Shown here: piece by piece, positions 6,125-55,233 of the stretch
Position numbering within the stretch: position 1 is the stretch's first letter
Layout: every line of letters starts with the position of its first letter
NCBI GenBank assembly: GCA_965649765.1
Contig: OZ287749.1
Coordinates: 62,930,001-62,994,000, forward strand
Direction of reading: 5' to 3'
Length of the DNA: 64,000 nt
Source: Bispira polyomma
Lineage: Eukaryota
The notes under the pieces: generated by a model
Told to the model about the DNA's origin: nothing
The model's input: only the letters and a program-made list of their open reading frames with translations
The model's database searches: none
Made by a program: the position numbers and the translations under genes

Positions 6125-6515
6125 NNNNNNNNNNNNNNNNNNNNNNNNNNNNNNNNNNNNNNNNNNNNNNNNNNNNNNNNNNNNNNNNNNNNNNNNNNNN
6201 NNNNNNNNNNNNNNNNNNNNNNNNNNNNNNNNNNNNNNNNNNNNNNNNNNNNNNNNNNNNNNNNNNNNNNNNNNNNNNNNNNNNNNNNNNNNNNNNNNNN
6301 NNNNNNNNNNNNNNNNNNNNNNNNNNNNNNNNNNNNNNNNNNNNNNNNNNNNNNNNNNNNNNNNNNNNNNNNNNNNNNNNNNNNNNNNNNNNNNNNNNNN
6401 NNNNNNNNNNNNNNNNNNNNNNNNNNNNNNNNNNNNNNNNNNNNNNNNNNNNNNNNNNNNNNNNNNNNNNNNNNNNNNNNNNNNNNNNNNNNNNNNNNNN
6501 NNNNNNNNNNNNNNN
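6125..6515. other. Assembly gap (391 N)
   Basis: Run of N. Confidence 1.
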
Positions 6516-6774
6516 AGCCAAAAGCTAGCCTTTCCCTTACTAAAAAATAATGTCCCCCATGCAAGATATATTTTAGAATTTCTTTTCCACAAGGAAAGCT
6601 TCACACACTATCTTAGAGCTATATCTGATCTAATCTAATTAATTCCATAATGACGCCTAATCTCTGTACTAGCGGATTCTAAGGCACAACAAACAAAGCT
6701 GGTGATATCTGTCTTTCATATAAGAAGTAGTTGAATATAAGTGTACATTATGGATAGTTCTTAGGACATGTAGT

Positions 6775-11268: not shown

Positions 11269-11493
11269 ATGGGAGCATGTTGTGGGAAAGGTTCCAAACC
11301 AAAGGATCCGGATAAAACGCCGTATGGGGCAATTCCAGCCGAACCACCCCCGACTATTCATGAGCCGAAGGAACGCACAAAGGCAAGGTCTTATGACGTA
11401 CCGGAAATCACCGTCGGCGAACGGACGTCGGGAGGGAAACCGGTGGAACACGAGGACAGCCGAGTGAACGAAGCGTCGCCGATTACTATACAG
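11269..11493 (+). CDS. Gene 1 coding exon 1: MGACCGKGSK... (N-myristoylation plus Cys palmitoylation-type motif; contains YDVP)
   Basis: aaaATGg start context; GC-richer coding-like sequence in an AT-rich background; candidate acceptors at 11168-69 or 11175-76 (so a 5' UTR exon lies further upstream); donor CAG|GCAAGT at 11493/11494. Confidence 0.8.
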
Positions 11494-13631
11494 GCAAGTA
11501 TTTTAATTGTCGTTAATTTACGGTATGTCAATGAGATAAAGTGACGTCTTTGCAAATCAAATGTTGGAAATATTCTGTGATTATATGGTTCTTTCAGTTG
11601 AATCAAACAAATAATCAACCTTTTACCCCATCAACAATTAAATTCTTCCAGGATCAACCATATGTTTTTGCCACGGTTTGTTTGTATGTTATTGTGCACA
11701 AATACTACTGAACTGAGTTTGATCAAATTTTGTGTAGGACTAGGCCATGTGTCGAGGAAGAACGATGAACTCATTGCATTTTGGGGCAGTGCATACCTTG
11801 TCAATGTGGTACGCAATGCCCAAACATGAAAAACAAGGTTACATCAAAACTACTTAACCGTTATCTGCCAAATTTTATTCACATTATTGTTGGACAGCAT
11901 ATTCTGATAAGTTATGCAGAGATTTTCATCAAGCTTGCTGGACATAGTTATTTCCCCGGCACAGACCCTTTCGAATTTGTACCCCATGGCAGAGTCTATA
12001 TTCAGTGTAGACTGAGTTTTCTGTCCTTCCTGATGCCTTGATTTACTGACGGTACGCACAGCGAAGGACAGAGTGGTTACTAAATTATTATGTTCTCTTC
12101 AATGGAAAATATACAGAATTTCTTCAAATAATGATATTTAATTAAGTACTTTTAGGTTAGCCATAAGTTATAATATTGTGTACGGCTATTGTAATAATCA
12201 ATATATAACCACAGACTAAATTAAAAGATTACATGTTTTTGTTATAGTTGCGGTGTCAGATTTGTTCAATTTTGCTCAGGTAACCGCTCTGTCCCTTGCC
12301 ATGTGTACCATCAGTAAAAATCAAAGCATTGTCGAGGACAGAAACTTGGTCTATATTCAGTGCTGTTGTATTTAGAATGTAACAGAAAGCTCTAAATAAG
12401 GATGCACATTGTTCAAAATTAATTAAGTACTAAAGGGCAAATAGGAAGGTACGTAGTGGCAAAAATTATGAACCTAGCTAAAAATATAATCTGCATTTTA
12501 AATATACAAATCATCGGGACAATACATTTTCAGTTGGAATTTCCCTTTGTAAAATAATTTTAAGTGAGTGCAATACTCATTTTACTGTCATCTCTTCATT
12601 CAAATTCAGTCTTGTGAAAATATTGATCATTTACTTCAGCCCAAAATTTGGTACATGTATATGATGTTGTAATGTGGGTTTTACAAGAGAGACTTAGTTC
12701 TAACAAGTAAGCATATGCATTGCATGACTGTATGAGCCTTTTAGAGAAGCTATTTGCTTCTGAAGAACCCATGATTTTATAAATCCTACTTTTCACAAAA
12801 AGAAATTGTGTCTTTGTGAGTATATTGTTACACGTATGGTGAATAACTATAATTTCTGTAATAAACACCCATGGGCTTTTCACTTTTCTGAAAGGGGATC
12901 TGGTGTTAAAGGACACCTTTATTAAGCGGTGGTGTAATATTTTGTTAAAAGGTCATTGCATAATGTTTAAAACATTTAAACTACACACAGAATGTCTGGA
13001 TGCTTAACCGTAAGCAAAAGAAATTTACATGCTCATCATCTGCATTATCTTACAATTAGCTAATACAAGTCACTCTTTAAACATTTTTAACATCCCTGGT
13101 TAAGGATAGATGTAACAATTATTATTATATTTTAGTGTATTACACCTGCTGAAATAGTGGCATTTAGTGGTCTAGATATGTCTTTAAAAGGGAGGGCGAT
13201 GTATAATTAGACAGGGGGCCTTTATACAGAAAATGAAGTTAATGATAGCTGTATGATGAACCAACTGACAGAGTGGAAAAATAGACCAATTTATGATGTG
13301 TGTCAAGTTAGTTCTTTATCTGAAATAAGGACCAGTGATAAAACTACTTCAAGCGCCACTTACTAGTTATTGAAGCAGGGAAAGTTATCTTTGACGTCAA
13401 GATCAAAACACTCCTAAGTTATCAGAAGAAGAAAAAGTCATACAAGAGTATGTGGAAAAACAGCTTTAAAGCTCGCAAATGAAAATAACATGTACCAGTA
13501 GTGGTATTCAAATACATGTACATACAACTGGTGTTGTAAATGGGATTCTTAGCCTTTCTCAGCCTCAAGTCTCAGCATAATTGAGCCTTTAATGAAGTTA
13601 CCTTAAACATTGTTTTATCTCAGTAAAACAC

Positions 13632-13888
13632 GGGGGCCGCGGTGGCCTAGTGGTTAGCAAGCATGGCGCTTCACAATCACTGGTCTCTCACCTCTGGGCG
13701 GCGTGAGTTCGAATCCCGTCGATGCCTATGTGGGAAAGGTGGTAGTTCCTTACTGTGGGCCGCTGGTTTCTCTGCAGAACCTTGACCGACTGTATGCAGT
13801 GTTTCCTCCAGCGTTTCCAACTACCCGTCCCAATATAACCTACTAAAAGGTACTAGAGTGGACGTTAAATATCCAAATTCAATTCAAA
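13632..13888 (+). mobile_element. tRNA-derived SINE, full length, 15-bp TSD
   Basis: A box TGGCCTAGTGG, B box GAGTTCGAATC, tail CAAATTCAATTCAAA; direct repeat ATCTCAGTAAAACAC at 13617-13631 and 13889-13903; two more close copies in the window. Confidence 0.92.
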
Positions 13889-13974
13889 ATCTCAGTAAAA
13901 CACATTAGAAATACCTTTAATGACCCTACCATAAACATTGTTTTATCTCAGTGAAACAAATTAGGAATACCAAG

Positions 13975-14160
13975 GTAGCCTCTGCTTCTGTGATCTTGGG
14001 TTCAAACCTCAGCCTTGGCATGTATATGGGAAAGTTGGTAGTAGACTTGCTGAAAGCCAGTAGTTTGTAGACCAGAAACCCCTGTTTTGATTATATTCAA
14101 CAGTGAACTGCCAGTAATAAGATGACACAAAACATGTTAAAAGAGATATTAAGCCTAAAC
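13975..14160 (+). mobile_element. Older diverged SINE remnant
   Basis: B-box-like GGGTTCAAACC followed by TATATGGGAAAGTTGGTAGT, resembling the body of the young SINE. Confidence 0.5.
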
Positions 14161-15429
14161 TACACTATGATCTCTCCATGTTGAGTAGACAGAGTTATCT
14201 GCCTCCAAAACAGCTGTGTGTTTTTACTGATGTTACGGCTGTTAGAAACAGAGTGGGTCCCATTAGCAAAAATTAACAAATACAATAATGATATCATATA
14301 ATGTATCATCAGTAAAATGTTAGCATCCTGCGGTGGGACAGATACTCGGTCTACTTGTTGAGGTGCAGGTCATTCTGAATTGTGATGTGTATATTATATA
14401 ATGTGGAAAACTCACTGCTTTTTTGCATTTGTGCTAGCAATTGTACTTTTGTTTGTGATTTTAAAAACCTAATATCATATGCATTGGTATTTGCATTTTA
14501 TGTGAGTGTTTGTATGTGTGTTATTGATTACTGATTATGCAGTATTAAAAATGATAAAAAAGACTGCATAGACTGATAGACATATAGAAACATTACATAA
14601 GTCTGATGGCAATCGACTTGTGACATGTGCGTAGTTGCAAAAATTGTAGCTTTTTATAGCTTCATATAGCTTTTTTCCACAACAGAACACACAGTAGAAA
14701 ATTGCAACACATACCTCCATAATCACAATGAAGTTTGAACCTTATAGTTTATTTGTGACCCTTTCTTGCATCGCAATGTGGCTTTGGGCCTAAAACTGAG
14801 AAACTTGGCATTGCTAACTAAGCAAAGATTAAATGTTATTGGGTCTGGCCTTTTTTGAGCCAAAAGAAAGACTTTAACCTTTCTGAAGATATGGCAATGT
14901 TACTACATGAGAGGGCCATTTTTGTATGCAGCACATATTACTTCTATTCGGGCAAATTGCACACAATTCAGGTTATTGGCATTTATGTACATAAGGACCT
15001 GCTAACATTTTGTTACCATTTACAAGGCAGCTTTTTAACATAACATTAAAGGGTCTGTGAGAAAGAAAACCATACATGCAACTCTGTTTATGGTGATCAA
15101 TAGGAAAAACACCTCTCATAAGGTTGTTTAAGGTTACGCTGGTTTCTATCCAGTTTGACACATTGACGTAGCTTTGATGAGCTGCTTGCTTTTAAGCACA
15201 GAATATGTATTGTAGAAGTGGAAAGGTTAGCTGAAAATTTTTTTTATATCAGTAGAACCTCCATTATCTGAACTTCTGTTCTCTGAATATTTAATCTGAT
15301 GAACACACTGTCACTCTCTCAAATTTACATTTTAATATTGTTTTATACTAAAATGCCTTTTCTGCTTTTTGACCCTTCTGTTATCACAACAAAATCATGC
15401 TCTCCCAACATGTACCTGTCTATTTTCAC

Positions 15430-16015
15430 GTTAACCATGGTGGCAAATGCCCTAGTCAGCAGTCGGCTTGATTACTTCCTCCCTTTTTAGAGGTCTGGCC
15501 ACAACTGACCTTGATGTTTACTGACATTACCCCTTTTTTATAGAAACCCTCCACTGGCTGCCTATTGAATATGGGGCAATATTCAAAACTGCTACTTTAG
15601 TCTATAAATACCTCAATTCAGGTCTCCTTGATATGGTAGTCCTTAATTGTTTCTCTATACATGTCAACGCAATACAAGGTGTACTAAGCCCGATACGGCT
15701 TTCTTAAGTGTCCCTACCTTTGTACAATCCATTTATAAGTAAAAAAGCCATATGATGCTCCTTTCAGCTGTGGAATGATCTGCCTCATGATATTCACACT
15801 GCCTCCTCACCTGTTTTAGAAAGAAGCTCAAAACCTACCTTTAAGCAAGGCTTTTCCACCTTAGGATCCTTACCATTTTCCGTGTCTATATGGTCATGAC
15901 CCCTGTACATCCAATGGCTATGTGAAGTTATGAATATGATTGTTCTGTCTCTTACACCTTAGAATCGTCTAGCATGGAGATAAGCACTATAAAAGTCAGA
16001 TTAGATATTCAGATT
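15430..16015 (+). mobile_element. Degenerate L2-type LINE 3' end
   Basis: ANALVSSRLDY, LHWLPIEY, WNDLP and FRKKLKTYL remnants. Confidence 0.75.
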
Positions 16016-16144
16016 ATACAGCTTCTACTGTACTTATATAATTAGCATATAGGATTGCACTTACCATAAACATTGTTTTATCTCGGTGAAACACATTGGA
16101 ACACAACAGTAGGCAGTAGCAAAAATAACCAGAATTCATTCTAA

Positions 16145-16491
16145 TGGCCCATTCACATTGCAACGAATCTGAATATACAGATTCGTTGGTTGGTATAAAT
16201 TAATAGGAGCTTTTGCACTGCAACTTATGAGGATAATGATCTAGAAATTTGGTAGGGATCAAAATGTGCATGAACCTTTTTTTCTAATTATTACACGAAT
16301 TGTTGAGGGAGATAAATAAATGCATGTGGAAATTAAACAACACCAACTAAATATAAGAAAAAGTGATATGTGTGTGCCAGATTTGGCCAATATTTTGGCT
16401 GTGTATGTACTGCCAGTGTATAAAATTAGTTTTTCGCAAAAATGGCCAAATTCTTTGATAAATACTGATTCGTTGCAATGTGAATGGGCTA
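16145..16491. mobile_element. MITE with ~25-bp TIR, Harbinger-like
   Basis: T(G/A)GCCCATTCACATTGCAACGAATC inverted at both ends; flanks are TAA and TTA (not an exact direct TSD). Confidence 0.75.
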
Positions 16492-18451
16492 TTAATTGAT
16501 AGTTTATATGCCAAAAAAAGCCCCCAAAGTAAGTTGAGATGCATGTATATAATATAGCATTACCAATAGGTTTCAATGAAAGAGAGAGTTGTTATGTGTA
16601 GGTGGTAGTTGTACATAAAGTAAAAACAAACAGCCATGTGGGTTGCATTTATGTTTTTTGTTTTTTTTCAAAAGTTTGGAAGCACAATATGGTATATATA
16701 GTCATGATCAGACTATGCAGTAGATCTGTTAATAATCTCAATTGACTTTTGTATTACCAGGGTACTCTATCTAATGCTTTTCATTTCCTATCAGTCAGTA
16801 ATATATACAGATCAATGTACAGACTTTTTAATGTCTGACTTCAAATAGTATCAGCCTAGTTTGCATTCTGTATCACAGACAACAAAAAAAATCTTTCCCC
16901 ATTACCACATCAGGTTTAATGGAAGCACAGTATCTCTTATTCAAAACTATAGTGGGAAGTTTCTGGATAAAAATTATTTCTAATTTTTTTTTGTTCAGGA
17001 AATAGAAATCCATCAATTTAGAAGCTGTTCAACCTAATTTTTGTTAGAAACATATATAAAAACGGATGTTTTGTCTTAATTATAACACTTTTTAGTGCTT
17101 ATTTGTGATTAACGTATATTAAATTCCAAGGCACTGACCACAATGTCACAAGTAACCTATAACTATATGTTGAAGATTACAATAAAGACATTACTGTTTG
17201 CTGAGACTTTTTTTTAGCTATTTTCGGTAATGTGTTTGATTAATGATTTTTAATTCATGGAAAATATGGTTCATTTAAAGTTCTCTTCAAAAGAAAAAAA
17301 AGATGATAGTTTTTTAAAAAGATTACAACAATGATAAGTATGGCTTGTAACAGTACTTGTGTATGTGGTTATCAGGCATATGTAATTATGTACATGTACA
17401 AAAGGGTCTTTCAATCAAATGGCTCTGATTTGAGGACTTTTTGTTGTTGCATATGATTAAAAAGCATTACCACTGATCACTTTTGGTGGTCAATGTTGAA
17501 GTCTATCCTCTATAAATTTGCATATATTAATCGATGTGTCATTCTTGAAAAACGTGACTGAAATATAAAATACATTCACACAAGTTTAGTTTATCTCGCC
17601 TAATTACAACATCATGTGGACAGCAATTAAGTGTTTGGTACTTTGCATCTTTATTGTACATCATATGTTGTGTGCACTTGGTAGTGCAAGAGTTAATTAT
17701 ATATACAGGGTTTGTCATTTAAGTGGCTCGTCCTAAATTACAAATTATAGACATACAGCAACAGTTTTTCTTTACAAGTCTTTGTTTTGCTATTAACAGG
17801 TTCTAACTTTACCCTGTAATAGTCACCCTGTCTACTTTTAATTGGGGATATGTAATATAATATTTGTTGCGAAATACATCGGCAAAGCAAAAATTTCTAC
17901 TCTTTGAGAACTTTTTCACAAAACCAAATTCATATAAAGTATCAATTTACCACAAAATGTAGTGTGTATCATAGAAATGTTGTCATAATTTGAATATACA
18001 CCAATATGTGGATTTTAAGTATAGGTTGGAGTTTGTGTTAGTGATCTCAGCCATTATTCTCAATTTTCAAAGAGTGATCAATAATGTGGACCCTAACCTA
18101 TACAGAGTAAAAATTGTAAAAGGTGTAATTTAAATGTTGTCAATTCCAAAACTATGATTAAATATACACATATGGATATACTTCTGAGACTCCTAAAAAA
18201 TTCTGAGTCAACAGATCCCAGAAAAAGTATAACTTGTGGTCTTTCATCCAATAAAGACACATATTTATACATGTATAGATATATCTTATACCCTATTCCT
18301 TTTGTGATTCTTTTTAAAAGATGCAAGTAAATATAGACTCTTTAAAAGTAGAGTACACTTTCAACATTCGGATAAAATCCCCAGGTGTAATTTAAGATGA
18401 TGTCATCATTTTTAAAAATAAGGGTGAATAAATACTTTCTAATACTTCTAG

Positions 18452-18610
18452 GTGACAGATCCCGGGGAAAGTATTGCTAACGGTCTGTCAGCCAATGAAA
18501 ACACAGAAAATGCACCTGAGAAACCTGAGAAAGCAGTGAGTTTTGGGACAAGTTCAGAGACACCCAGATTATCAGATTTTATACCCCCATATGAGGCAGA
18601 CAAGATTCAG
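18452..18610 (+). CDS. Gene 1 coding exon 2 (VTDPGESIANG...YEADKIQ), low complexity
   Basis: Acceptor tacttctAG|G; donor CAG|GTAAAT; 53 open codons, phase 0/0. Confidence 0.8.
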
Positions 18611-19349
18611 GTAAATACAATATTATATACAAGAGCATTCAGTGGGAGATTGCGAACCTCTTGGGTAGCATTAGTCTTAGCAAAATTGTTGGTGTTTAGT
18701 TTTGATTACAGCAAATTCTAAGTTGTAAATTGTACATGTATTAAATCTAATAACAATCACATTAGCATTTCGATCCGCTTTTTATACTAGATGTATTTCC
18801 AAACTATGTTTTTGTACTTCCATAAATACTGTCAGGTGATATTTACAATTAGCTTTTTTTTGTATGCTTTGTTCTATCTGTAAAACCTCAAAGTCTGTTT
18901 AAGTAATAAAGGTTCAACTTTTGTACTTTTCTCATATCTTTTTAATTGTTGGTTGGGATACCTCTATTGAGGAGAGGGCTAATCAGTAGGAATTATAGTC
19001 ATGCAGAATCATACATGAATAGAATGAACCTACTGGTATATACTACTATAAGCCTTTTCTTTTTTATGTACTTGCAAAGCATATTTTTCTGTAATTCCAC
19101 TAAATACTATACACAAAGTTTTCAGCTATATTTAGTGTTAGCATTTCCTGCATGTTTTATACACAATTAAAATTTTTCATTTTCTGAATGTACTTTTACC
19201 TCCTCAAAACGCTTAAAATCTGCAATAGGTAAAAGAGGTTAAACATTTTACTTTTCTTGATTACGATACCAAAACAAAAAAACTCTCTAAATCTGTCATA
19301 GTAATAGAGATTATAGATTTTACTTTATTATTTCTTTTAAATTAATCAG

Positions 19350-20430
19350 GATACCTCTATTGAGAAGACTAGTCATTCAGAACCCTCGTCATCCAACACA
19401 ACAGCCACTGAGGATACAGATGTGGGTCAGGTGGTACTCCACATTGATGAATCTTCCATCAAGACCCCAGACAGAGGATGCATGGGAGCAGCCAGCTCTC
19501 CTCCACCACCCCTGCCTGAAAAACATGGCGGCATAGGCAGTTCTCCATCCTTGCCAGCCAAACATGGTGGAGCTGCTCCTCCTCCGCCCCTACCAAAAAA
19601 GCATGGATATGTTACGCTTTCTTCGTCGTACAACACGGGACTGCCACCACCACTACCCGAAAAGCAGAACAAACTCTCACCTTTGTTATCACGTAAGGAG
19701 CCCATACCACCACCTGAAGAGATTCCCACTGTCTCACCTGCTGTAGCAGGGAAGAAGCAGGAGCCAGCTATTAAAGCTCCAGAAGAAGAGGCTATACCAG
19801 ATCCACATACCATTATAGAAAACGTCAGGCATAAAGCGAAAGATGGCGGATTTGCTGAGTTACAAATCTCACAAAAGAATAAGCCCGTCCCAGAGAACCC
19901 CACAAAGGTGTCCATTCAACAGAATAGGGAGGTACCTCCGCTAAAAAGTCCCATCAGTCTAACCAAGACAGATGCCAATCAGAACGATTCCATGGCCATA
20001 CTTGGCGCATTAAAAATGATCAGAAATAGCAGTAGTGGAGTTTCAGAGATTGAAGACAAAGAAGAAGTAAGGCAGACAAGTACAAAAGAAGTGACAACAT
20101 CAGTCACTGGAACAAAGCAGAAGTATGAGAAAATTGTAGAAACCAAGATCTCGCAGGAATCCGGTGAAAAAGTAACGTCAACAAAGACAACAACAGTAGA
20201 AAAAATAGTGACACAGATGAGCTCTAGTGGTGAAGGATCCAAGATACCCGTCTCACCCATCAGGAAAGAATTATCACTGAAAGAAGAATCGAGCAAGAAG
20301 TCTCCAACACTGCAAGAGGGTACAGGGGGATCATTAAAGCTGCAGACTACAGCGGTGGCTCCCCTGGTCAATGGTGGTGGTACTACAGAATCAAAGAAAG
20401 GGCAGGACAGTGACCAAAAAGTAGTAGAAG
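19350..20430 (+). CDS. Gene 1 coding exon 3: Pro-rich then Ser/Thr/Glu/Lys-rich, probably disordered linker
   Basis: Acceptor attaatcAG|G is in frame with ORF 19422..20444; donor GAAG|GTACGT (phase 1); motifs PPPPLPEKH, PSLPAKH, PPPPLPKKH, PPPLPEKQ. Confidence 0.85.
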
Positions 20431-22533
20431 GTACGTACAGGTAAAAATGCTAGCCAGGAGTTATTCCTTTTTACCATGCTTTTTTTCAATATTGATAATA
20501 TTTTAGATGCAGTAGAACCTCTATTATCTAAATATATTGGGAGAGCAATATTTTGTTCGGATACTGGATGATTCATCAACCAGAGGGACCATTTTAAATT
20601 AATGCAATAGGAAAATATAAATTCTGGCTAGTTGATTTGTGATCATATATATGTAATGGGAAATTTGGATTATTAATCTGTTTTTTTTTCATGGCACAGT
20701 GTGTTGTTAATAAAACTGTAATGAAAGCAGCTACATCTTGTACAGATTATTCTATTAACAGATGCTATTTCAACAGGTGTTAAAATACAGAGGCATCAGA
20801 TGTTGTATGTAAAGTAATTACCAGTAAAACAGTTGGACCCAGTATTCTGAAAAAAAGCTCCAAGCTCAAACTGAGATTTCAACTAAAATGAAGGTTATGT
20901 TAACAATTTCCTATACATGTAACCATTCATTGGAAGAAGACCTTTCAGTGGTAAATTTAAATATTTTACCTAACTTTACGATCGACTGAGATAGTAAAAC
21001 CTAAAAGTTGAGCTTGAGTCTGACCCTATCTAGAGAATTTTACAGAAGTATTAACTATGGCCTGTAGAAGCTGTTTTACAGTTGTGTGACCGAGGTTCTT
21101 TTTTAATGTACTATAGACTGCCTGTAATATGCCACTTATACAGTAGAATCTTTATTATGCAAACATATTGAGAGTGCAAAATTATGTCTGGATAATAGAA
21201 GGTTTATAAAATAGTTGAGATATATTTGTATAGAACTATGGGAAAACATAAATTTTTGAGTATGGAAATGAGATTATAAAATATAACATTGGGATACTAT
21301 CTTAGTGCAAGTTCAGATAATAGGAGGTTTTACTGTAAGTTTGACACGTTATGAAACACAAACTTAAAAAACCATAAAGCACAGAAATCAGGTCCTAAGT
21401 TTGGGTAAATGTGGGTTAAAATGCTGGAAAGGATGTTATTATTTGTTAAGCCATTTGATATATTGATCATTTTAATGTATGTAAGGTTTTAAGAGTGGCA
21501 AATGCTAGCTTAGTGACACAAGTGTTTCAAGCACGAGCTAAAGAGTAAAATTATTGTGTGCATGACTTGCTGCTTCATCAAAAATTTCTTTGTATGCCAA
21601 CATCTATGTAGATGTATTTTTTTGGGCTTTTATTCAACATGTGTTTCTAATCTTGATCAGATCTTTCTACTAGGACTACATCTTCTGTTTCACATAAAAG
21701 AAAGAAATCAACTTAACAGGATTCTACTTTTACTGCATAATATATTAAAATTGGTAAAATGCTACTGTGCTAAAAGTTTAGACAAAATTGTTGAAATATG
21801 TAGCTGCTAAAAAATAGCTAGCTCGATAAAATTCAAATGTGATTAAAATACAGATTATAAACAAATTTATTGTCAGACTAAGTCATTGCATCTTAAACAA
21901 ATCAACTGACACTGTGTAATTTTTTTGTTAAAAAAAAATAGCATTTGTGTCACAAGACCTTTTAAAGTAAAAAAAAGTTAAGTAAAAACAAATAATGTAA
22001 CTGGCCGATTTTTTTTTTTACTGTGTAATAAGATAATAATATAATCACATTACATTGGTAATTCTTTACATCTGACACACTTTGACAATACATGAGTCAG
22101 AAATCACAAGATGTCTTAAAAATTAAAAATTGACTGATTTTTCATACAAAATGTCTTCTTAGAAGTACATATAAATAAAATCCTTTTGGGTGAGTACTTT
22201 TGAGAGGATCGATTGTCCCATCTGTATTTTTATGAGGCTGACACATGGGTACTTGCTTTAGATTGTTGTTGCTGCTGACTACACATCTCTATAATTACAG
22301 TAGAACCTCTGATCGGAACTTTTGTTATCTGAATAATCAATAATATTATGTCATTTTCACTCTCAAAAAATTATTTTTCCTTTTATAAATTTTTATTAGA
22401 CATGTGTACTACAATATCTTTTCTATCCTCTATTATCCAACCAAATCTTGCTCTCTTTACTTGTTTGGATAAAAAAGGTTCTATTGTCACTGTAAAGTGA
22501 GGGGAAATATCTTTGGAACCCTTTGTACGCTTG

Positions 22534-23365
22534 AGCTCATTGCAGACCGAATCCGGCATGACGCAACACAGCAAAAAAAAAGAAACCTAATAAAATAACC
22601 AGCCATTGTACAGTAAAGCCGACGCGACACGGCGCAACACGACCCGTTTTTTTTTAAATAGAAATTTCTCTATTTTTTGTCATGTCGCGCCTGAGTCATT
22701 CACGGAAATGCTGAAGAAATCATTTAATCATATTTTTTTTATACTGGCTAGTCATTGCCTTATTAAAATAATTTCAATTACTGACAATTGTTACCCAACT
22801 TTTAACTCAAATTTTCACTCCTCAATTGTTAAGTTGCCATTTCTGGAGGGAGGGTTTGAATTTTTAATTCCTAATTGCATTACTTACCTAATTTTCATTA
22901 ATATGGACAGATAGTAATTAAACTTACAATTACACAATGCAAGTAATGACGCTGTAAGAGAAGGGGAGTCTTAAATAGCCAAGATTATTGGTCAATTGCA
23001 ATGTAAAAACTTCAGCAGGGATAAAAATTGTTGACACAGGCCCACACCATAAACCTAACTTTCCCAGTTGAGTGCAATCAATTGCAATTAATAATGACAT
23101 CTCTACTAACTCTGGAAATCACCTTAGTCTTAGTTTAAATATAAATTGGTATTTAAGTATGTGGTTATAAAAGCCATAACAATATTTAAACTTGATTGGA
23201 GTTTAAATAAATATTGATAGTGTTGTGTGTGTGAGTATTTCAATATTTGTTTCTAGATTATTGCTGTTTACTGTCGCTTTTGGTGTGCAAGCAAGGTATA
23301 ATTGGTGTAGTGTCTCATCGACAAGGGCCGTGTCGCGTCGCGCCAGTGTCAGTCTGCAATGGGCT
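22534..23365. mobile_element. MITE, Harbinger-like
   Basis: AGC(T/C)CATTGCAGAC TIR with subterminal GACGCGACACGGC repeats; flanks TTG and TTA. Confidence 0.65.
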
Positions 23366-23454
23366 TTACTTTTAACACTCAGTTGTGTTTGACCATTTTC
23401 TTATATTTTCTGTACACATTATACCTCTTGGCATATGTCTATTCAGACATAGGT

Positions 23455-25028
23455 TATTATTAAGCGTCCCGTAAGGGCGCTTGTTTGTATATAGGAGGTA
23501 AATTTACGCATTTTCGGTCATAAGACTTATTTGATTGGTCGAAATGTAATGACACTATATTGAAAATTTGCCCAAGGTCTACTGGATACATGTGCCAAAT
23601 TTGAAAAGAATCCATCCAGTGGTTGCTGAGTTACAGCCAATTGAAAATGCGTGACTAAAAAAATTTCCCTTGATTTGTATACAGGAGACAATTCACACGG
23701 AAGGGGCCGCCGGCTCCGCCGGCTCCCGCCTTTTCTATTGGCTATAGCTCAGCAACCACTGGGCGGATTCTCTTCAAATTTGGCACATGTATGCAGTAGC
23801 CCTGGGAAAAAATTTTGATTATAGTGTCATTACATTTCGGCCAATCAGAAGTCACATGACACAAAACACGTTTTTTAAAGGGGTGTGCTTGTCCGGATGA
23901 TAACTTAAAAAGCGCCGTACCTATTCTCACGAAATTTGACAAGTAGGTTTGATAAGTTATCCGATACAAAATAGCTGACTTATTAACGATTAATTAAACG
24001 TTACGATTTTTTGAAACAAAGAAAATAAAAAATCCTTAATATCTCGGAAACAGTGTGGCATAGAGTGATTTCGGCTGAATTTTGGGCCCACAGATTAAAA
24101 AATTCTTTTAAAAATGTTAAAATTTTGCAAAAGTTCTCAATCTCAATTTTTTTTAAATTTTGCAAAAATCTTTACTCTCAACAAAGAAAATAGAAAATCC
24201 TTAATATCTCGGAAACGGTGCAAGATAGAGCGATTTCGGCTGAATTTTGGACCCAGAGGGCATACTCAGTGTATAACATTTTTTTAAAAATGTAAAAAAT
24301 TTTTTTTTTTTGCAAAAAGTCCTCCATCTTAACACAAAATCCTTAATATCTCGGAAACGGTGAGAGATAGAGTGATTTCGGCTGGATTTTGGGCCCACAA
24401 GGTATAAATTTTTTAAAAAATGTTAAAATTTTAAAAATTTTGCAAAAGTCCTTAATCTCAACAAAGGAAATGAAAATTCCTTAATGTCTCAGAAACGGTG
24501 AGAGATAGAGTCATTTTGGCTGAATTTTGGGCCCAAAGGGTATAACATTTTTTTAAAAATGTAAAAATTTTTTTTTTTACAAAAAGTCCTCCATCTTAAC
24601 AAAAAATCCTTAATATCTCGTAAACGGTGAGAGATAGAGTGATTTCGGCTGGATTTTGGGACCACAAGGTATAAAATTTTTAAAAAATGTTAAAATTTTA
24701 AAAATTTTGCAAAAGACCTCAATCTCAACAAAGAAATGAAAAATCCTTAATATCTCAGAAACGGTGAGAAATTTTGACATTTTCAAATGTTTTTTTTTAA
24801 AAAAAAAAATGAAATTTTCAAAAAAGGGGGGGGGAATATATTTTTTTTAAATTTAAAAAAAAATCGCTCTCACCCCATTTTTGGCCGCCAACTTGAATTT
24901 CTGCGTTTATCTCAGAAACGGTGCCAGATAGAGCAATTTCGGCAGAATTTTGGGCTCGGAGGGTATATGCAGAAAATTGCTCAATGTCTTATTGGGACGC
25001 TTTGTTTTTGCAAAAACAGTTTCCTTTC
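23455..25028 (+). mobile_element. Helentron-associated non-autonomous element (HINE/DINE-1-like) with internal tandem array
   Basis: 5' subTIR AAGCGTCCC (23462) with adjacent partner GGGCGCTT; 3' subTIR GGGACGCTT (24994) followed by the palindrome TGTTTTTGCAAAAACA (25003-25018); array of ~130-165-bp units at 24030-24780. Confidence 0.75.
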
Positions 25029-25251
25029 ATTTGCAAAGCAGTACTCTAGTTAAATTATCTAAGTTTGTTGTGTATTATCTATTGAACTGTTTTAGATTCA
25101 AAAGAATCATTCAGTTTAGGGTGAGATCTTAATTGTAAACATTTTAGTCATTCACTGTATTCATTTAGTGGGGAAGCCTTTTTTTAGATCATATCTCAGA
25201 ACTTTGAATTTTAAAAAAAAGATAAATGTGTTCTAATATGCGTCTCAGTAC

Positions 25252-25314
25252 ATAACGTGATCCTATTTTGTGGTACAGAATAATAACGTGATCCTATTTT
25301 GTGGTACAGAATAA
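25252..25314 (+). repeat. 31-bp tandem duplication just upstream of the exon 4 acceptor
   Basis: ATAACGTGATCCTATTTTGTGGTACAGAATA x2. Confidence 0.9.
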
Positions 25315-25350
25315 TAAAAATTTGAATATTTCAGTTGTTTTTTTTTTCAG

Positions 25351-25406
25351 ATGTGTTAAACAAATCCAAAGAAACAAGTGCCATTACAAATGGAAGTAAA
25401 GTTGAA
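25351..25406 (+). CDS. Gene 1 coding exon 4 (56 nt; DVLNKSKETSAITNGSKVE)
   Basis: Strong poly-T cAG acceptor and GAA|GTAAGT donor; converts phase 1 to phase 0 exactly as needed to join exons 3 and 5. Not in the ORF track. Confidence 0.8.
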
Positions 25407-25822
25407 GTAAGTTTAGTGCTCTTACTTAAATATTTCTTCAATTAACATTTTGGGCCCTTTACACATAACAAACCATTATCTGTAAATCTTAGGTCATCTA
25501 TGGCAAGTGTATTCCTCACAAATATAGCAAACTTTCTAACATTTACTTGATCTTAAAGAACTTACTTGAATTAAAGAAAATGTGTAACGATTCTAGAAAT
25601 CACTGGACAGGGAGCGCCCATTTTGGCGTATGAATACATAATGCTAAACATAAAGAATAACACAAAACCCTTATACCGCTAAACCTGAAGGATAACACAA
25701 AACCCTCATACCGTGATAGTAGGAAGAAATGTGTCCTCAAAAAAACAAAATTTACAGTTACGTCTCTACTTGTGCTATAGTTTTTATAGTTTTATTAAAT
25801 GTGCTCTTTAAATGTGCTTTAG

Positions 25823-28800
25823 GATTCTGTGGAAGTAAAAGAATTGGCCAAGGAAATTAATGAAAACCATAGAGCCTCTCTGTCATCATTGTCCTCAGAT
25901 GAATCCTCAGACTTAGAAGGTGGTTATGTCTTAATGGAGAATAAAAAGACATCTGTGTTGGAATTACTTCCCGATTGTAAAGCCGCCAATGATGACATCA
26001 AGTACAAGCATAGATTCTGTCCGAACACACGGCTGAGCACCCTTAGGAACATTGAGAAATGGATGAACAGGGACGAAGAGCAGCCTCGCTGTATGGTCAT
26101 CAAGGCAGCACCGGGTATGGGAAAGACCTCACTGTTGAAGGAAGTTTGCTCCAAGTATAGCTTACAGTTACTGGCAGACCATTTCTTCTCACACTGTAGC
26201 AACAATCTGGGCCATTCTGATCTCCATCAGGTTGTACTTTCCTTGGCACATTCTTGCACAGAGAAGCTGGATAACTATGTCGGATGCTTGCCAACTCTGG
26301 AAGAAGTAAAACAGATTGTGTACTATGGGTCCACAGAACAGGTACTGGACACGTTTATTTATAGTGCTTTGTCTTCAGAAGGCCTTGGTCATGAAGAAGA
26401 CAGGAAGATGCTGATAGTGCTGGATGCCCTAGATGATTGTAGTTTCTCTGATAGGGATGCTCTTTTCAGATTTGTAAATGAGTTTACACAGAAAGCACCA
26501 AAGTGGTTGTATCTTCTGGCAAGCATTAGGGATGAAAACCAACTTACAAGTTCTCTTACTGCTGTCTCTGTCTTAGATCTATGTGATAATGCAGAAAATA
26601 TGGCGGACATGAAGAAAATGATGAAGGAATCATTAAGCCCCTTTATGGACAGAATCAGCTTGGATGGTGGTTTAACTCAATTGGCCAAAAAGTCAAAAGG
26701 ATTAGCACTGGCTGCATCTCTGTATAATAGAATGCTCAATGGAATGGATAGACAGAAAGGAATTGCACTAAGGGAGATTGATATAAAGTTTCCAACAGGA
26801 ATGAATGGAGTTTTAAGGAAAGTTATGAAAGACTTTAAGGCACTTTTAGATAGAGAAGCTGATGCAAGCTATTTCTATAATACTTTATTAGGCATGCTAT
26901 GCTTTGCGAGGGAACCAATCCCTGTTACCTTTGCAGAGGCCATTGACATCCGAAATGCAGACCAAGTCTGGAAGGCGTTAAGTGTCATAGTGGATACTCA
27001 TGGCCAGAAGGAAGACTGCAAGTCATTGTACCACAAAAGCATAGCAGAGTGGTTGCTAAATGAAAAACTGTCAGAAGAATTTCAACTAGATGGTGTGGCA
27101 GCAAGAAATGAGATTGGAAGGTTATGTATCAACTGGTTGTCACCGATGTTAGACCAGATGCCATATGAAGATACTCCTGTGTTTAGATATGCTCTGAAAA
27201 ATTCAGTGAGTCATTTGACTGACATTCCAAAGCAACAGGAAAGCATAGGAAATATACTTTGCAGTTTGAGAGCCACTCAGATGAAGCTTGAAATGAATGG
27301 GGTCAGTATTCTCCATGTAGGAAATGAATACAACCATACTCACACACGGATTGGGGATGCCAACAAAGAAATCATCCTAAAGGATTACATGAAGAAAGTT
27401 CCAAAGCTGTCTGAACAACTGCATTTATGGTATTCATTTTTGGCAGATAATCAAATTGAACTCTTCCATTCCCCAAAGAGTGTCTACCAGTTGGCAGCTA
27501 ACTATGTTCACAGACCACGGGTACAACAGAATGCAAGGGTAGAGTTAGCAAAACAGTCTTGGTTAGAAGATATATCTACTGGTCTTGTGGGTAATGTTGA
27601 TTATAAAGTACTACCAGGTGAAGCCAGGCTAGTTGATGTATCTCCTGATGGGAAGACTATGGCAGTAGTGCTAAGTAGTAGTGAAGAAAATGTACAGTTA
27701 GTCCAATACAGTACAAGTACCTTGGAAGAAACATCAAGTGTAGACATAACAGCTCTAGAAGATCGTAAAGGACTATGTTGCAAATTCTTACCTGACAATG
27801 CAAATGTATTTGTCGGATCTCTTGTGAAGTATGTAGGTAGAAAGGGCAAGATAATTCCAAGTGATCTTGATATGAAATCACTTCAGGTCAAACAGAAGTT
27901 CAGCGTTGAATGCTGTACTGTTTCAACCAAATACTTGGCTACATCTTTATCAACATTCCCTTGGGGCGGTCGTTCTGTCCATTTAGCAGTGTTTGGCTTG
28001 AAAGAAAAAAAGGCTGTAAAAACATTAGAAGTGCTTAACTTTAGGTTTGGTGGAAGTGCAAACTTTGGCATCAGATGCTGTGCGATATCTCCTGATGAAA
28101 AACAAATCATAGCCTGTGTAAAGGACAGCAACAAGAACCAATTGAAAGTGAATGTTTGGAATATTGGCAAGTGGAACATTGCGCATACTCTTGATGTTGG
28201 TGGAGAAAATATACTGAGATGTCATTTCTTTGAATCAGAAAAAATCATTGTGGATGTAAAAATGGTCGACTCTAACATTTGTAGATCATATATCTGGCCA
28301 TGTCAAAAGTCAGGTCAGCCTAGCATTGTAGGAAGGGAAAAGGCCAGTTCTGTTAGCTGTACATTTCAGTCTAAGGTGGCTGTCGTGTCCTGGGACAACA
28401 GGAACAAAGGTCAAATAAGTGTGTGGAAGAGGGGACAGGCACATGAGGACGCAAACACGTATAAGTTCAGTGGAATGCAACTCAGTGATCAAACTGTCTT
28501 CTGTCAATCGTATGCCATTTGCCTCAGCAAGGACATCATGCAAGTATTTAACATCAGTGATTCAGAAGTCATGGATAAGGCTGTGACCGAACTAGATGAT
28601 CTGGACATTGCTGATGTTACCTTTATGCCCAGGTCAGATACCAGCATTCTGTCACATGTAGCTGCAAACGATGACGAATGTATGCTTTCAATTTTCAACT
28701 GTGATAGTAAACTAGATGACATACATGTCAGGTCAACAAAGGTACCTCAGCAGACATTGATACAGAGTGAGAGTCTGGTATATTCTAATGTGTTCCAGGG

Positions 28801-29779
28801 CATCAATAAACCTGGCAAGAAATGCTACACCTCTCATGATGGAAAATACTTGATCATGTGCTATGGTAATGGGATATCCTTGTGGAATGACCAGACAGGT
28901 AAACTTGAGACCTTGCCGTTTCCTGATGATATTGACAGTGACCAGCTGATTGATATGTGTATTCCTTCAGCCAAAGAGTCTATCCTGGGGGTAGTGTATA
29001 AACAGCACAACCACAAGGTCATACTTTTTGATTTGCGAACCAAGAAAGAACTAAGGAGAGTAGGCTTGGAAGGTGATCCATTGAAAGCTGCTGTGACTGA
29101 TATGACTTTTATTCCACACAATGGTGCTTTGATATCTTATCACCGAAACATGGAGCACAAGTTAGTGGTATGGAACCAAAGTACTGGAGCAGAGCGAAGC
29201 GCCTTGTCATGCAAGATCAATTTCTGCCGAGTGTCTTCTTCCTCAGACCGGTTTGTTCTTTGCTGCAGAAAGATGGAATCTGGTCATTTACAACTACGCA
29301 ATAGTGATGCCACGTTTTCTCAGAAATTACAGACCCCGGAGACATGGTCATTTCAAAGGTTCGACTTTGATCTGGAATTTTCTCTGGACGGGACTGTTTT
29401 GGCGGGTGTTCAGAGCCAGGGTCACATGACACGAATATGGAATGCTGGGAATGGTGACATATTGAAAGATTTTACGTTGGGTTTTATTGGATCACCTTCC
29501 ATAGTGGGTATGATCACAAATACACATATGGCCATCTATGATGGAAGGATCCTGGTTATAGATATTGCCTCTGCTGAACTATTGAGTGTCACCCCCCTAC
29601 CACAGCCAGGCCATGGACGTCACTCAATTGCTCAGCTCTCGGTGTCTCCAAGGGGTAATATTATTGCTGCGCTCTACAGTGATGGTGCTATGATCATGCT
29701 GAAGTGTCACAACTTTAGCTCCGTAAGGATGACCACTACTCTGCAACGAATGAAATCATTCTCAGGGCTACACAACTAA
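25823..29779 (+). CDS. Gene 1 terminal exon: NACHT NTPase, helical/winged-helix region and WD40 beta-propeller repeats
   Basis: 1318 open codons. Pre-NACHT motif FCPNTR..L..IEKW, Walker A AAPGMGKT, Walker B MLIVLDALDDC, sensor-like LASIR, KSKGLAL, winged-helix LYHKSIAEWL, YALKN..SHL. WD40-like blades follow (VSPDGKTMAV, CAISPDEKQII...VNVWN, ISLWN, VILFDL, LVVWN, FSLDGTVLA...TRIWN, VSPRGNIIA). Acceptor gctttAG|GAT. Confidence 0.93.
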   Translation, partial: DSVEVKELAKEINENHRASLSSLSSDESSDLEGGYVLMENKKTSVLELLPDCKAANDDIKYKHRFCPNTRLSTLRNIEKWMNRDEEQPRCMVIKAAPGMGKTSLLKEVCSKYSLQLLADHFFSHCSNNLGHSDLHQVVLSLAHSCTEKLDNYVGCLPTLEEVKQIVYYGSTEQVLDTFIYSALSSEGLGHEEDRKMLIVLDALDDCSFSDRDALFRFVNEFTQKAPKWLYLLASIRDENQLTSSLTAVSVLDLCDNAENMADMKKMMKESLSPFMDRISLDGGLTQLAKKSKGLALAASLYNRMLNGMDRQKGIALREIDIKFPTGMNGVLRKVMKDFKALLDREADASYFYNTLLGMLCFAREPIPVTFAEAIDIRNADQVWKALSVIVDTHGQKEDCKSLYHKSIAEWLLNEKLSEEFQLDGVAARNEIGRLCINWLSPMLDQMPYEDTPVFRYALKNSVSHLTDIPKQQESIGNILCSLRATQMKLEMNGVSILHVGNEYNHTHTRIGDANKEIILKDYMKKVPKLSEQLHLWYSFLADNQIELFHSPKSVYQLAANYVHRPRVQQNARVELAKQSWLEDISTGLVGNVDYKVLPGEARLVDVSPDGKTMAVVLSSSEENVQLVQYSTSTLEETSSVDITALEDRKGLCCKFLPDNANVFVGSLVKYVGRKGKIIPSDLDMKSLQVKQKFSVECCTVSTKYLATSLSTFPWGGRSVHLAVFGLKEKKAVKTLEVLNFRFGGSANFGIRCCAISPDEKQIIACVKDSNKNQLKVNVWNIGKWNIAHTLDVGGENILRCHFFESEKIIVDVKMVDSNICRSYIWPCQKSGQPSIVGREKASSVSCTFQSKVAVVSWDNRNKGQISVWKRGQAHEDANTYKFSGMQLSDQTVFCQSYAICLSKDIMQVFNISDSEVMDKAVTELDDLDIADVTFMPRSDTSILSHVAANDDECMLSIFNCDSKLDDIHVRSTKVPQQTLIQSESLVYSNVFQGINKPGKKCYTSHDGKYLIMCYGNGISLWNDQTGKLETLPFPDDIDSDQLIDMCIPSAKESILGVVYKQHNHKVILFDLRTKKELRRVGLEGDPLKAAVTDMTFIPHNGALISYHRNMEHKLVVWNQSTGAERSALSCKINFCRVSSSSDRFVLCCRKMESGHLQLRNSDATFSQKLQTPETWSFQRFDFDLEFSLDGTVLAGVQSQGHMTRIWNAGNGDILKDFTLGFIGSPSIVGMITNTHMAIYDGRILVIDIASAELLSVTPLPQPGHGRHSIAQLSVSPRGNIIAALYSDGAMIMLKCHNFSSVRMTTTLQRMKSFSGLHN

Positions 29780-43592: not shown

Positions 43593-44185
43593 AACTGAAC
43601 TTTGCACTTCTTCTAAAGGTTAACCTTGTGTTTTTTCCAGCCAAATTCTTTTCATCCCAAATTTTGCTATCATAAATGGTAAGACCAACTCCCCAGTACT
43701 TATCATGCGGGCTAGCCTCTACAATTCTCATGTCCGAGGTATCTTTTAGAAAATTGGCCAGATCTTTGTGTTGCTGAAATTTTTCCTGAGTGGAATCTTC
43801 AGAAATTCATTGCAGACCTCACTCTAGGAGCTGTAGGTAGAGTTATTTACCTTATGTCCCAGTGATTTAGTAAACTTTGAATCTGATGTTTGTAGAATTT
43901 TTTCAGCTATCACCTTATCATTGAAGTAAACTGTCTTTTTATGCATCAAAGACTGTTCAGTAGATGAAAAGTTCTTGTCTTCAACTGTGATATCACAAGG
44001 GTAGTGATTGGATAGAGGTGACCTGGATGTGAAGAATGCAGTGATATCATTTTTAGTGATGATAGAGATGTGCGCAGGTTGAAGTTCATTAGACAGGGTT
44101 AAAATGTCATCAGTGGTGTATAGCTTGCCAATTAACTGCAGCTTGTCCATGACTAATTTTGCTTTATAGTTTCCTTTTAATCTCT
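43593..44185 (-). pseudogene. Decayed NADAR (YbiA/DUF1768-like) domain preceded by a LINE-ORF1-C-terminus-like segment
   Basis: Minus-strand translation: KAKLVMDKL..GKLYT...FFTSRSPLSNHYPC...FSSTEQ...KSLGHKV...(TAG)...[frameshift]EKFQQHKDLANFLKDT..IVEASPHDKYWGVG...GKN. These match the NADAR motifs SNF/Y, E-Q/H, GRKV, KF.Q, VEASP.D..WG.G and G.N. One stop and at least one frameshift. Confidence 0.85.
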
Positions 44186-45248
44186 TTATATATAGAAGAA
44201 CTTCAGGGAAGAACCTCAGCATCCCCCATTGTGGACATACAGTACTAAAATAGCATTCCCCACTGTATACCTATATATAGGAAAGAACTTCAGGGTAGAA
44301 CCTCAGCACCCCCCCACTGTTTGTTTGGTGTAATATAAATGTATATTGATTGTGTGTGTTCTTTGATGTAAATAAATATATATTTACCCAATTGTATGCT
44401 TATTTCTTGTAGCATCTATACAGTGGTGTTTAAATTATCAAAATCAGTTAATACAACACACAACTCTTATAGTAATTAACACAGTCAAGTAGAAGTTCAA
44501 TCAGCCAATGAATCCATACATGGAACTGCTGCAAATGGGTTCCGTGTATTTAGTAATACAGCATTTCTTATATTATCCCTACTAGGTTACGTCAGAAAAA
44601 AGCATGTTTAAGTGAGAGATAAATAAATAATTTTCTGCAAATTAGGCAATCTATCATTGTGGAGAGCACCGATAAATACTAACCAGTCTTCCATATAAGG
44701 ACATTTAACTGTTTCTGATCTTCGACTTGACAAGAACCGCCAACGATGTCTTACAGTTTATAAAATGATGAAATTTAATCAAATATCAAAAGTTTAAATT
44801 ATATATAAGAGAGTCTCCACATAAATCATCACAAGCCATAAAATACAAAACCATAATTATATAGAGGGTCTTTGGACCATATTTATATGCTACTCTGAAT
44901 TAAATTAAACGGCCTTCGAAAATGGCACTTATTCGCTTTTGGGTCAGGTTTTCTCGCCGTCTCCGCATTATCATCTTCCTTTAACACTTCTATCAATATT
45001 AAAAATATCAAAATGATTTTTGAGAGTTATCTTCTTTAGGCTTGGGAAACTTTTTCTACATGTATCAAGGTCATATGGCATATATGTTACAGGCATTAAT
45101 ATCTGAACCCCAGTCGATTTTTATATCAATCGGGCCATAAACGAGTTATTGACAAGTGTTTGATTTACCAATGCTATAAAAAAATACATGTGCATCAAAA
45201 TATCCCCTTTTGTCACATATTTTATAATGTTTTCATCTTAACTAAACT

Positions 45249-54670: not shown

Positions 54671-55233
54671 ATGTGACTGGCTGCGAGAGCACACAACCAC
54701 TTGACTTGACTGTAGGCCGTCCAGAGGAGGGAGAATTTGACGACAGCTTCGACTCCAACTTGCTGTGCATTGACCAAGATCACGATACAGAGCTGATCCT
54801 GGACGACAGCTTGGGGTCCCTGGAGCAGTACACGTGTATCTGTAGTCGGGCGTTCTCCGACTACTCCGTCTACACCGATCATGTGGCCAACTGCCACAAG
54901 GCCCGCCTCACCCCGTACAAGGCGTGCGAGATCTGCGGCAAGTACTTCTTCTCCAACTCTGGCTACGTGAAGCACAAACGCCTCCACCTGGGTGCCTACA
55001 AGTTCCACTGTGATATCTGCCATAAGGGGTTCTTTGACCGCACCCACATGCGGGCCCACATGGACAGCAGCCACTCCAAGGTGCGCCGCTACGAGTGCAA
55101 GCACTGCAGCAAGAGTTTCTTCTGGAAACACCACCTGAAGCGCCACCTAGGCACCTGCGACCAGGCCCGCAGGCACTCCTCCTCAATGGTGGTGGAGGAG
55201 TCTGGTGCCCAACTTGATAGCTTACAAAGCTAG
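54671..55233 (+). CDS. Gene 2 terminal coding exon: PLDLT motif plus four zinc fingers (atypical CxC..HC, two C2H2, terminal C2HC)
   Basis: Acceptor actactatAG|AT (phase 1); CEICGKYF...HKRLH, CDICHKGF...HMDSSH, CKHCSKSF...HLGTC; stop TAG at 55231-33. Confidence 0.92.

Follow-up and report, generated by a model that had tools for sequence, protein, structure and literature searches.

How might a STAND NTPase signal if no folded effector accompanies it? The question is raised by a gene in a 64,000-nucleotide stretch of the genome of the annelid Bispira polyomma (assembly GCA_965649765.1, contig OZ287749.1, positions 62,930,001 to 62,994,000 of the forward strand), referred to here as the window, within which positions are counted from its first letter. 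Between 11269 and 29779 on the plus strand, a single gene unites an intact NACHT and twin propellers with a disordered tail and a Gly2/Cys start, an arrangement that comparison with related loci and proteins establishes as old within annelids. We put at about 0.5 the probability that this single-copy protein serves as both switch and scaffold while tethered to a membrane.

Five exons form a single gene

Five exons encode 1,825 residues, and a scripted frame check joined them in frame with no internal stop, exactly where the sequence-only reading had placed them; the joined model served for this check only, and searches were run on the exons one by one. Exon 1 (11269..11493, +; 75 residues) ends in phase 0 at a GC donor, which lies in a strong context (CAG/gcaagt) and corresponds to a GT donor, at the matching place and phase, in a close relative (L003/L006). 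A second route through intron 1, with GT-AG borders throughout, is likewise in frame. Exon 2 (18452..18610, +; 53 residues) and the Pro/Ser/Thr/Glu/Lys-rich exon 3 (19350..20430, +; 360 residues) encode disordered tail, exon 4 (25351..25406, +) contributes 56 nucleotides running from phase 1 to phase 0, and exon 5 (25823..29779, +) holds the entire STAND core and propellers in 1,318 residues plus the stop. About 540 residues of low-complexity sequence precede the NTPase, in agreement with the earlier estimate of roughly 530; hydrophobic residues make up about 20% of this region, compared with 37% of the core. Degenerate copies of the exon 2 start (18211-18261) and of the intron 2/exon 3 junction (18882-18975), 72 to 76% identical, lie just upstream of each exon and may be relics of tandem exon duplication.

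In the close relative the five exons occur in the same order, and 8/8 splice sites are kept with their phases. Identity is 54% in exon 2, 61% in exon 3, and 82% in exon 5, and exon 4 has equal length and phases. The ratio of nonsynonymous to synonymous substitution rates (dN/dS), calculated with synonymous sites near saturation, is 0.17, 0.19, and 0.11 for exons 1, 2, and 3 and 0.067 for exon 5, exon 4 being too short to judge; by this measure, tail exons 1-3 are under purifying selection. The same three parts, Gly2/Cys start, disordered tail, and NACHT-propeller core, come joined independently of the window model in proteins from Capitella teleta (ELU08536.1; 1,667 residues, start MGGACSK) and Dimorphilus gyrociliatus (CAD5125826.1; 1,367 residues, start MGSCLSK), and in an uninterrupted open reading frame (ORF) of 1,996 codons (start MGATCAK) on a 6.5-kb mRNA-like contig. 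A matching ATG exon lies 4.6 to 8.3 kb upstream of the NACHT exon at three more distant loci (L004, L012, and L014); at L010, L011, and L015-L017 the upstream 10 kb yielded none, although the exon may be located farther away.

It is very improbable that exons 1-4 and exon 5 belong to separate genes or are joined by chance. Such a split would fit the complete core in exon 5 alone and an annotated Paralvinella model that lacks the acyl start, and the sequencing runs of the host are DNA, so that no read spans a junction. No start exon of its own was seen for exon 5, however, and because splice sites, phases, and exon order are conserved and three proteins from other species are already joined, we conclude from these comparisons that exons 1-5 are a single gene.

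The start carries a predicted dual acylation signal

An in-frame stop lies 5 codons 5' of the window ATG, so that Gly2 follows the true start; in-frame stops precede the start ATG at six loci. The first codons (11269..11289, +) specify a predicted myristoylation (Gly2) and S-acylation (Cys4/Cys5) signal, after which comes a Lys. Each of the eight known N-termini begins MG-x(1,2)-C, with Cys at position 4, 5, or both and Lys at 6 or 7; in each, as in dual-acylated proteins, Gly2 comes directly after the initiator Met and a Cys falls within residues 3-5. Such a start conforms to the consensus for combined myristoylation and palmitoylation (PMC13043302), and Gly2 is probably myristoylated and Cys4/5 S-acylated. 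Of the MGxCC signature first proposed for this locus, the Gly2 plus Cys start is thus conserved, but the exact MGxCC is not, the family form being MG-x(1,2)-C.

Residues 13-20 (11305..11328, +) form a D.D[KNR].PYG motif that recurs in 7/8 N-termini, with z scores of 3 to 10 over shuffled sequences. In human NPHP3, too, the myristoylated Gly is presumably followed by a Tyr-Gly-Ala at around residue 20, and the resemblance to window positions 11305-11331 would be compatible with a shared trafficking signal. The N-terminal 60 residues of the Capitella protein, used as a query, matched only themselves, in a search weakened by the query's length.

The core resembles Apaf-1

Pfam identified an NPHP3_N-type NACHT in exon 5 (PF24883; E value of 1e-12, above the cut-off) and gave weak WD40 matches. 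AlphaFold2 (AF2) predicted a module consisting of nucleotide-binding, helical, winged-helix, and second helical domains (NBD-HD1-WHD-HD2; 25922..27556, +, bounds approximate) with a pLDDT confidence score of 90, the best structural match being Apaf-1 (E value of 6e-10). Two divergent β-propellers follow (27560..29713, +; pLDDT of 85), with about 14 to 15 blades by strand count, and their best match is full-length Apaf-1 (E value of 2e-27). The complete NACHT-WD40 module previously called here therefore stands for the NACHT, and for the propellers by predicted structure, whereas WD40 similarity is weak at the sequence level. The sole match in a sequence search of the PDB, a weak one to DXR, concerns an unrelated protein and was dismissed as chance.

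Walker A (26105-26131, +), AxPGxGKT in the window, retains GK[TS] in 23/23 members; Walker B (26411-26440, +) follows the pattern hhhhD[AG]xD, its first Asp present in 22/23; the WHD His motif (27023-27043, +) has its His in 21/23; and the HD1 Gly is kept across the 23 members. Since these residues of Walker A (Lys), Walker B (acids), HD1 (Gly), and WHD (His) are kept, the nucleotide switch looks functional. At L005:2480-2510, on a contig covered 2.6x, Walker A contains a frame break that is most likely a sequencing error.

The propellers gave no self-match at an E value of 10, and their dN/dS is 0.07 to 0.09. The lack of similarity between internal repeats, together with strongly conserved patches (27782-27823 and 28028-28069, +), points to propellers that read a fixed ligand, unlike those of the reshuffling HET-E-type genes. 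The protein ends in a basic helix, TTLQRMKSF (29735..29764, +; helical in the AF2 model), whose TLQRxKS ranks with the best-conserved parts of the family (T, L, and Q in 21/21 members, R in 17/21, and S in 19/21) and is preceded in most members by a basic KRxT. We take TLQRxKS to fit the hydrophobic-x-R-x-x-S consensus of CaMKII/PKD-type kinases, which makes it a candidate site, and the helix is possibly a phospho-switch or a membrane or calmodulin contact.

The tail contains no folded effector

Low-complexity sequence directly precedes the NTPase in every member. Tail length ranges from about 150 to more than 800 residues, and beyond the start motifs the tails do not align with one another. 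Pfam detected no domain in the tail exons or in the full-length tails, in line with the earlier claim that no folded effector is present.

The window tail also carries four PxLPxK motifs resembling class II SH3 ligands (19506..19664, +; 0.03 expected). From such sites the sequence-only reading had argued that oligomerization could gather SH2/SH3 docking sites and link the sensor to tyrosine-kinase signaling, and had seen in this the rationale of the architecture. The PxLPxK motif is indeed far above chance here and occurs four times in the close relative as well (three of them in its exon 3), a YxxP in exon 1 is shared with that relative, and one Tyr, that of PYG, is widely conserved. PxLPxK is, however, absent from every distant tail (0), and PxxPx[KR] is at chance level in all of them; YDVP and YVLM are local, being kept no further than one close relative, and YVLM sits at the start of the core's first helix predicted by AF2. 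Tyr is scarce (about 7 per 540 residues), tail length is variable, and we know of no common SH2 ligand class that the conserved PYG context matches. Nor does the protein resemble an FRS2/Dok-type docking adaptor, in that its phosphotyrosine and SH3 motifs are not conserved across orthologues and Pfam returned no PTB or PH match. On this distribution of motifs the SH3-type array is a local, lineage-specific add-on, and coupling to tyrosine kinases is unlikely to be what the family has in common.

An amphipathic island, MA[IL][FLS]xA[LM][KR]x[ILV] (19989..20021, +), recurs in five lineages and is a candidate partner-binding helix; in a leave-one-out scan it exceeded all 500 shuffles in the window, P0015, L010, L014, and the unseeded L011. 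A second island, DP..II..V[RK], is weak (p of 0.02 to 0.04 outside the close pair). Over the first 40 residues of exon 3 (19350-19469), identity with the close relative exceeds 90%, much higher than elsewhere in the tail, yet this stretch was not found in distant members. In the Dimorphilus protein (P0159), amphipathic helices at residues ∼50-70 and 120-138 resemble what we take to be AKAP-type PKA-binding helices, with no such Pfam match.

The family is apparently confined to annelids

The gene is single copy in the host genome, whose COX1 reads in the invertebrate mitochondrial code. A profile search of 1.8 billion representatives retrieved about 15 full-length members (860 to 1,990 bits), followed by a sharp drop; their database labels are hypothetical or NPHP3_N-domain protein. 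Since the named members (Capitella, Dimorphilus, and Paralvinella) are all annelids and no named mollusc or other match was obtained, the family is probably limited to this phylum. A FastTree phylogeny of 30 sequences, fragments of <400 residues being excluded, separated the family from its outgroups with modest support (0.82) and did not resolve its inner branches. Invertebrate HEPN-NACHT-WD40 proteins are the nearest outgroup, which suggests, tentatively as regards direction, that a folded effector was lost or replaced in the annelid family.

A fast-evolving sister group (L015/L016 [P0033], P0027, and P0035) keeps the HD1 and FRFGGSA motifs; later exons divide up its propeller part, and no start exon was located for it. 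G000 contigs C1, C3, C5, C6, C8, and C10 carry at least eight other NPHP3_N-type NACHT loci, four of them in open frames of 1,100 to 1,300 residues.

Comparison with known STAND proteins

Apaf-1/Dark shares with the annelid protein the order NBD-HD1-WHD-HD2 and two β-propellers, and is likewise a conserved single-copy sensor. At 14 to 15% identity, however, the annelid protein has an acylated disordered tail in place of a CARD and a Walker B of NACHT type (hhhhDALD). HD2 and tandem propellers are present, the Dimorphilus member even gives a Pfam match to APAF1_C, and Pfam found neither a CARD in the tails nor PF00931. We rejected Apaf-1 orthology: the NTPase is NACHT-type rather than NB-ARC, and there is no CARD.

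The invertebrate HEPN_DZIP3-NACHT-WD40 proteins, closest in sequence (∼22% identity over part of the core), differ in their folded HEPN effector, canonical WD40 repeats, and many clusters, and no acyl tail was seen in them. Fungal HNWD proteins (HET-E and NWD2) also combine NACHT with WD40 and form the nearest clusters in feature space, but the annelid protein has no recognized HET, HeLo, or amyloid effector, and its propellers show neither the near-identical, reshuffling WD repeats nor the diversifying selection of that class.

Alternatively, the protein might be a membrane-anchored immune sensor that lacks its own effector, guarding a host protein or sensing damage and passing the signal to a helper NLR or death-domain adaptor, with the tail mainly as a spacer. 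NAIPs and plant SUMM2 are models for sensors that hand their signal to a helper. The HEPN-containing outgroup is consistent with such a role, as are the myristoylation of SUMM2, which signals via helpers, and the free variation of tail sequence and length. Single copy number, strong purifying selection, and unshuffled propellers are unlike pathogen-tracking NLR or HNWD families, and no helper gene was seen adjoining the window gene; we regard this role as rather doubtful.

SUMM2 and RPS5, both plant CNLs, carry an MGxC-type myristoyl plus palmitoyl anchor and signal by membrane clustering (PMC13043302). They retain a folded CC domain, NB-ARC, and leucine-rich repeats (LRRs) and belong to an unrelated lineage, so that the likeness is convergent; no C-terminal LRR, the mark of an NLR proper, was found in the window protein by Pfam or in the AF2 model. 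TANC1/2 and Rolling pebbles are STAND scaffolds with a disordered, motif-bearing N-terminus that includes SH3 motifs and no folded effector; their C-terminus consists of ANK plus TPR repeats and a PDZ ligand rather than propellers, and the part of the source available to us describes no acyl anchor (PMC5533708). Neither ANK nor TPR repeats follow the window NTPase in Pfam or the AF2 model.

NWD1, NWD2, TEP1, NPHP3, and TTC41 constitute the TeTIR-NACHT family, in which a TeTIR of 200 to 350 residues lies directly before the NACHT (10.64898/2026.09.21.753143). The family includes animal NACHT proteins with C-terminal WD40 (NWD1/2 and TEP1) and the N-myristoylated NPHP3, but low-complexity sequence occupies the TeTIR place in every annelid member; no TeTIR was recognized before the NACHT in more than 20 members, as judged indirectly from composition and sequence of this region without a TeTIR profile. 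NPHP3, reported to be a myristoylated and cilium-targeted STAND, raises the alternative that the annelid protein is directed to the cilium or another compartment, its acyl end being a trafficking signal and its role structural or developmental rather than immune. The window NACHT does fall in the NPHP3_N Pfam family, and the gene is a conserved single copy. That Pfam family is broad, however, taking in fungal NACHTs, and the TeTIR, coiled coil, and TPR are all absent from the window protein. Trafficking of myristoylated NPHP3 uses UNC119/ARL3, whereas additional S-acylation usually favors stable membrane binding over release from a carrier. We consider a ciliary or other compartment-targeted role unlikely.

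Other features of the window

Introns of the gene contain an element of very high copy number that has 129-nucleotide tandem units and long inverted arms (23460-25055), two elements with terminal inverted repeats (22534-23365 and 16142-16494), and, by eye, a tRNA-like short interspersed element (13630-13880). An ORF on the minus strand (43824-44222) has a match to NADAR that narrowly passes the Pfam threshold (E value of 1.5e-8), a C2H2 zinc-finger exon of a neighboring gene lies at 54673-55233 (+), and a run of N spans ∼6126-6516.

A proposed membrane-tethered switch and scaffold

We favor a membrane-tethered switch and scaffold because of the splice conservation, the dN/dS of the tail, the three joined proteins, the acyl exons at four more loci, the Apaf-1 fold, the nucleotide site, the single copy, the conserved and non-repetitive propellers, the low-complexity sequence in front of the NTPase in all members, and the precedents among known STANDs. 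Dual acylation would anchor the protein in either the plasma membrane or an endomembrane, with the core at rest ADP-bound and closed, like that of Apaf-1. Nucleotide exchange and oligomerization would then be triggered when a ligand, invariant and probably endogenous, binds the conserved patches of the propellers. On long flexible tethers, the oligomer would cluster short motifs, namely DPDKxPYG, the amphipathic island of the tail, and the C-terminal helix with its candidate phosphorylation site. The protein would in this way signal with no death domain and neither TIR nor HEPN, much as TANC scaffolds presumably do.

Several observations weigh against this reading. Acylation, the ligand, the output, nucleotide exchange, and ligand-induced oligomerization are steps that we infer for the annelid protein. 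D.D[KNR].PYG is missing in Dimorphilus, and the scan for the tail island did not find it in Capitella, Dimorphilus, L004, or L012. The first Gly of Walker A is Ala in the window, and the sensor-1 Arg is present in just 13/23 members. The three runs that hold the gene cover its introns evenly, as expected of DNA, and so gave no RNA support for splicing, and only three members of the presumed annelid family are named to species. A stricter form of the favored reading, which we advance tentatively and hold to be clearly less probable, is an apoptosome-like sensor whose whole output is the lipid-anchored disordered tail, such that ligand bound by the conserved twin propellers would induce a ring on the membrane and cluster motifs with no effector domain (death, TIR, HEPN, or enzymatic) and no helper NLR.

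The sequence-only reading presented the architecture as new outright, which overstates the case, since acylated STANDs (NPHP3, SUMM2, and RPS5) and effector-free STANDs with disordered tails (TANC1/2) are known. It is nevertheless right that no matching family turned up: in the literature searched we found no account of a conserved family that unites an acyl anchor with an effector-free tail and with twin propellers like those of Apaf-1. The apparent restriction to annelids limits wider interest. Described animal NACHT-WD40 proteins carry a folded effector beside the NTPase; the annelid family suggests that a conserved Apaf-1-shaped sensor can lose this effector and gain a lipid anchor, converging on the myristoylated receptors of plants. 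As a single-copy gene annotated in the laboratory annelid Capitella, it offers a clean test of STAND signaling by short motifs alone. If the proposal is correct, output through the tail only would give Apaf-1-shaped receptors a distinct mode of signaling, one retained throughout the annelids.

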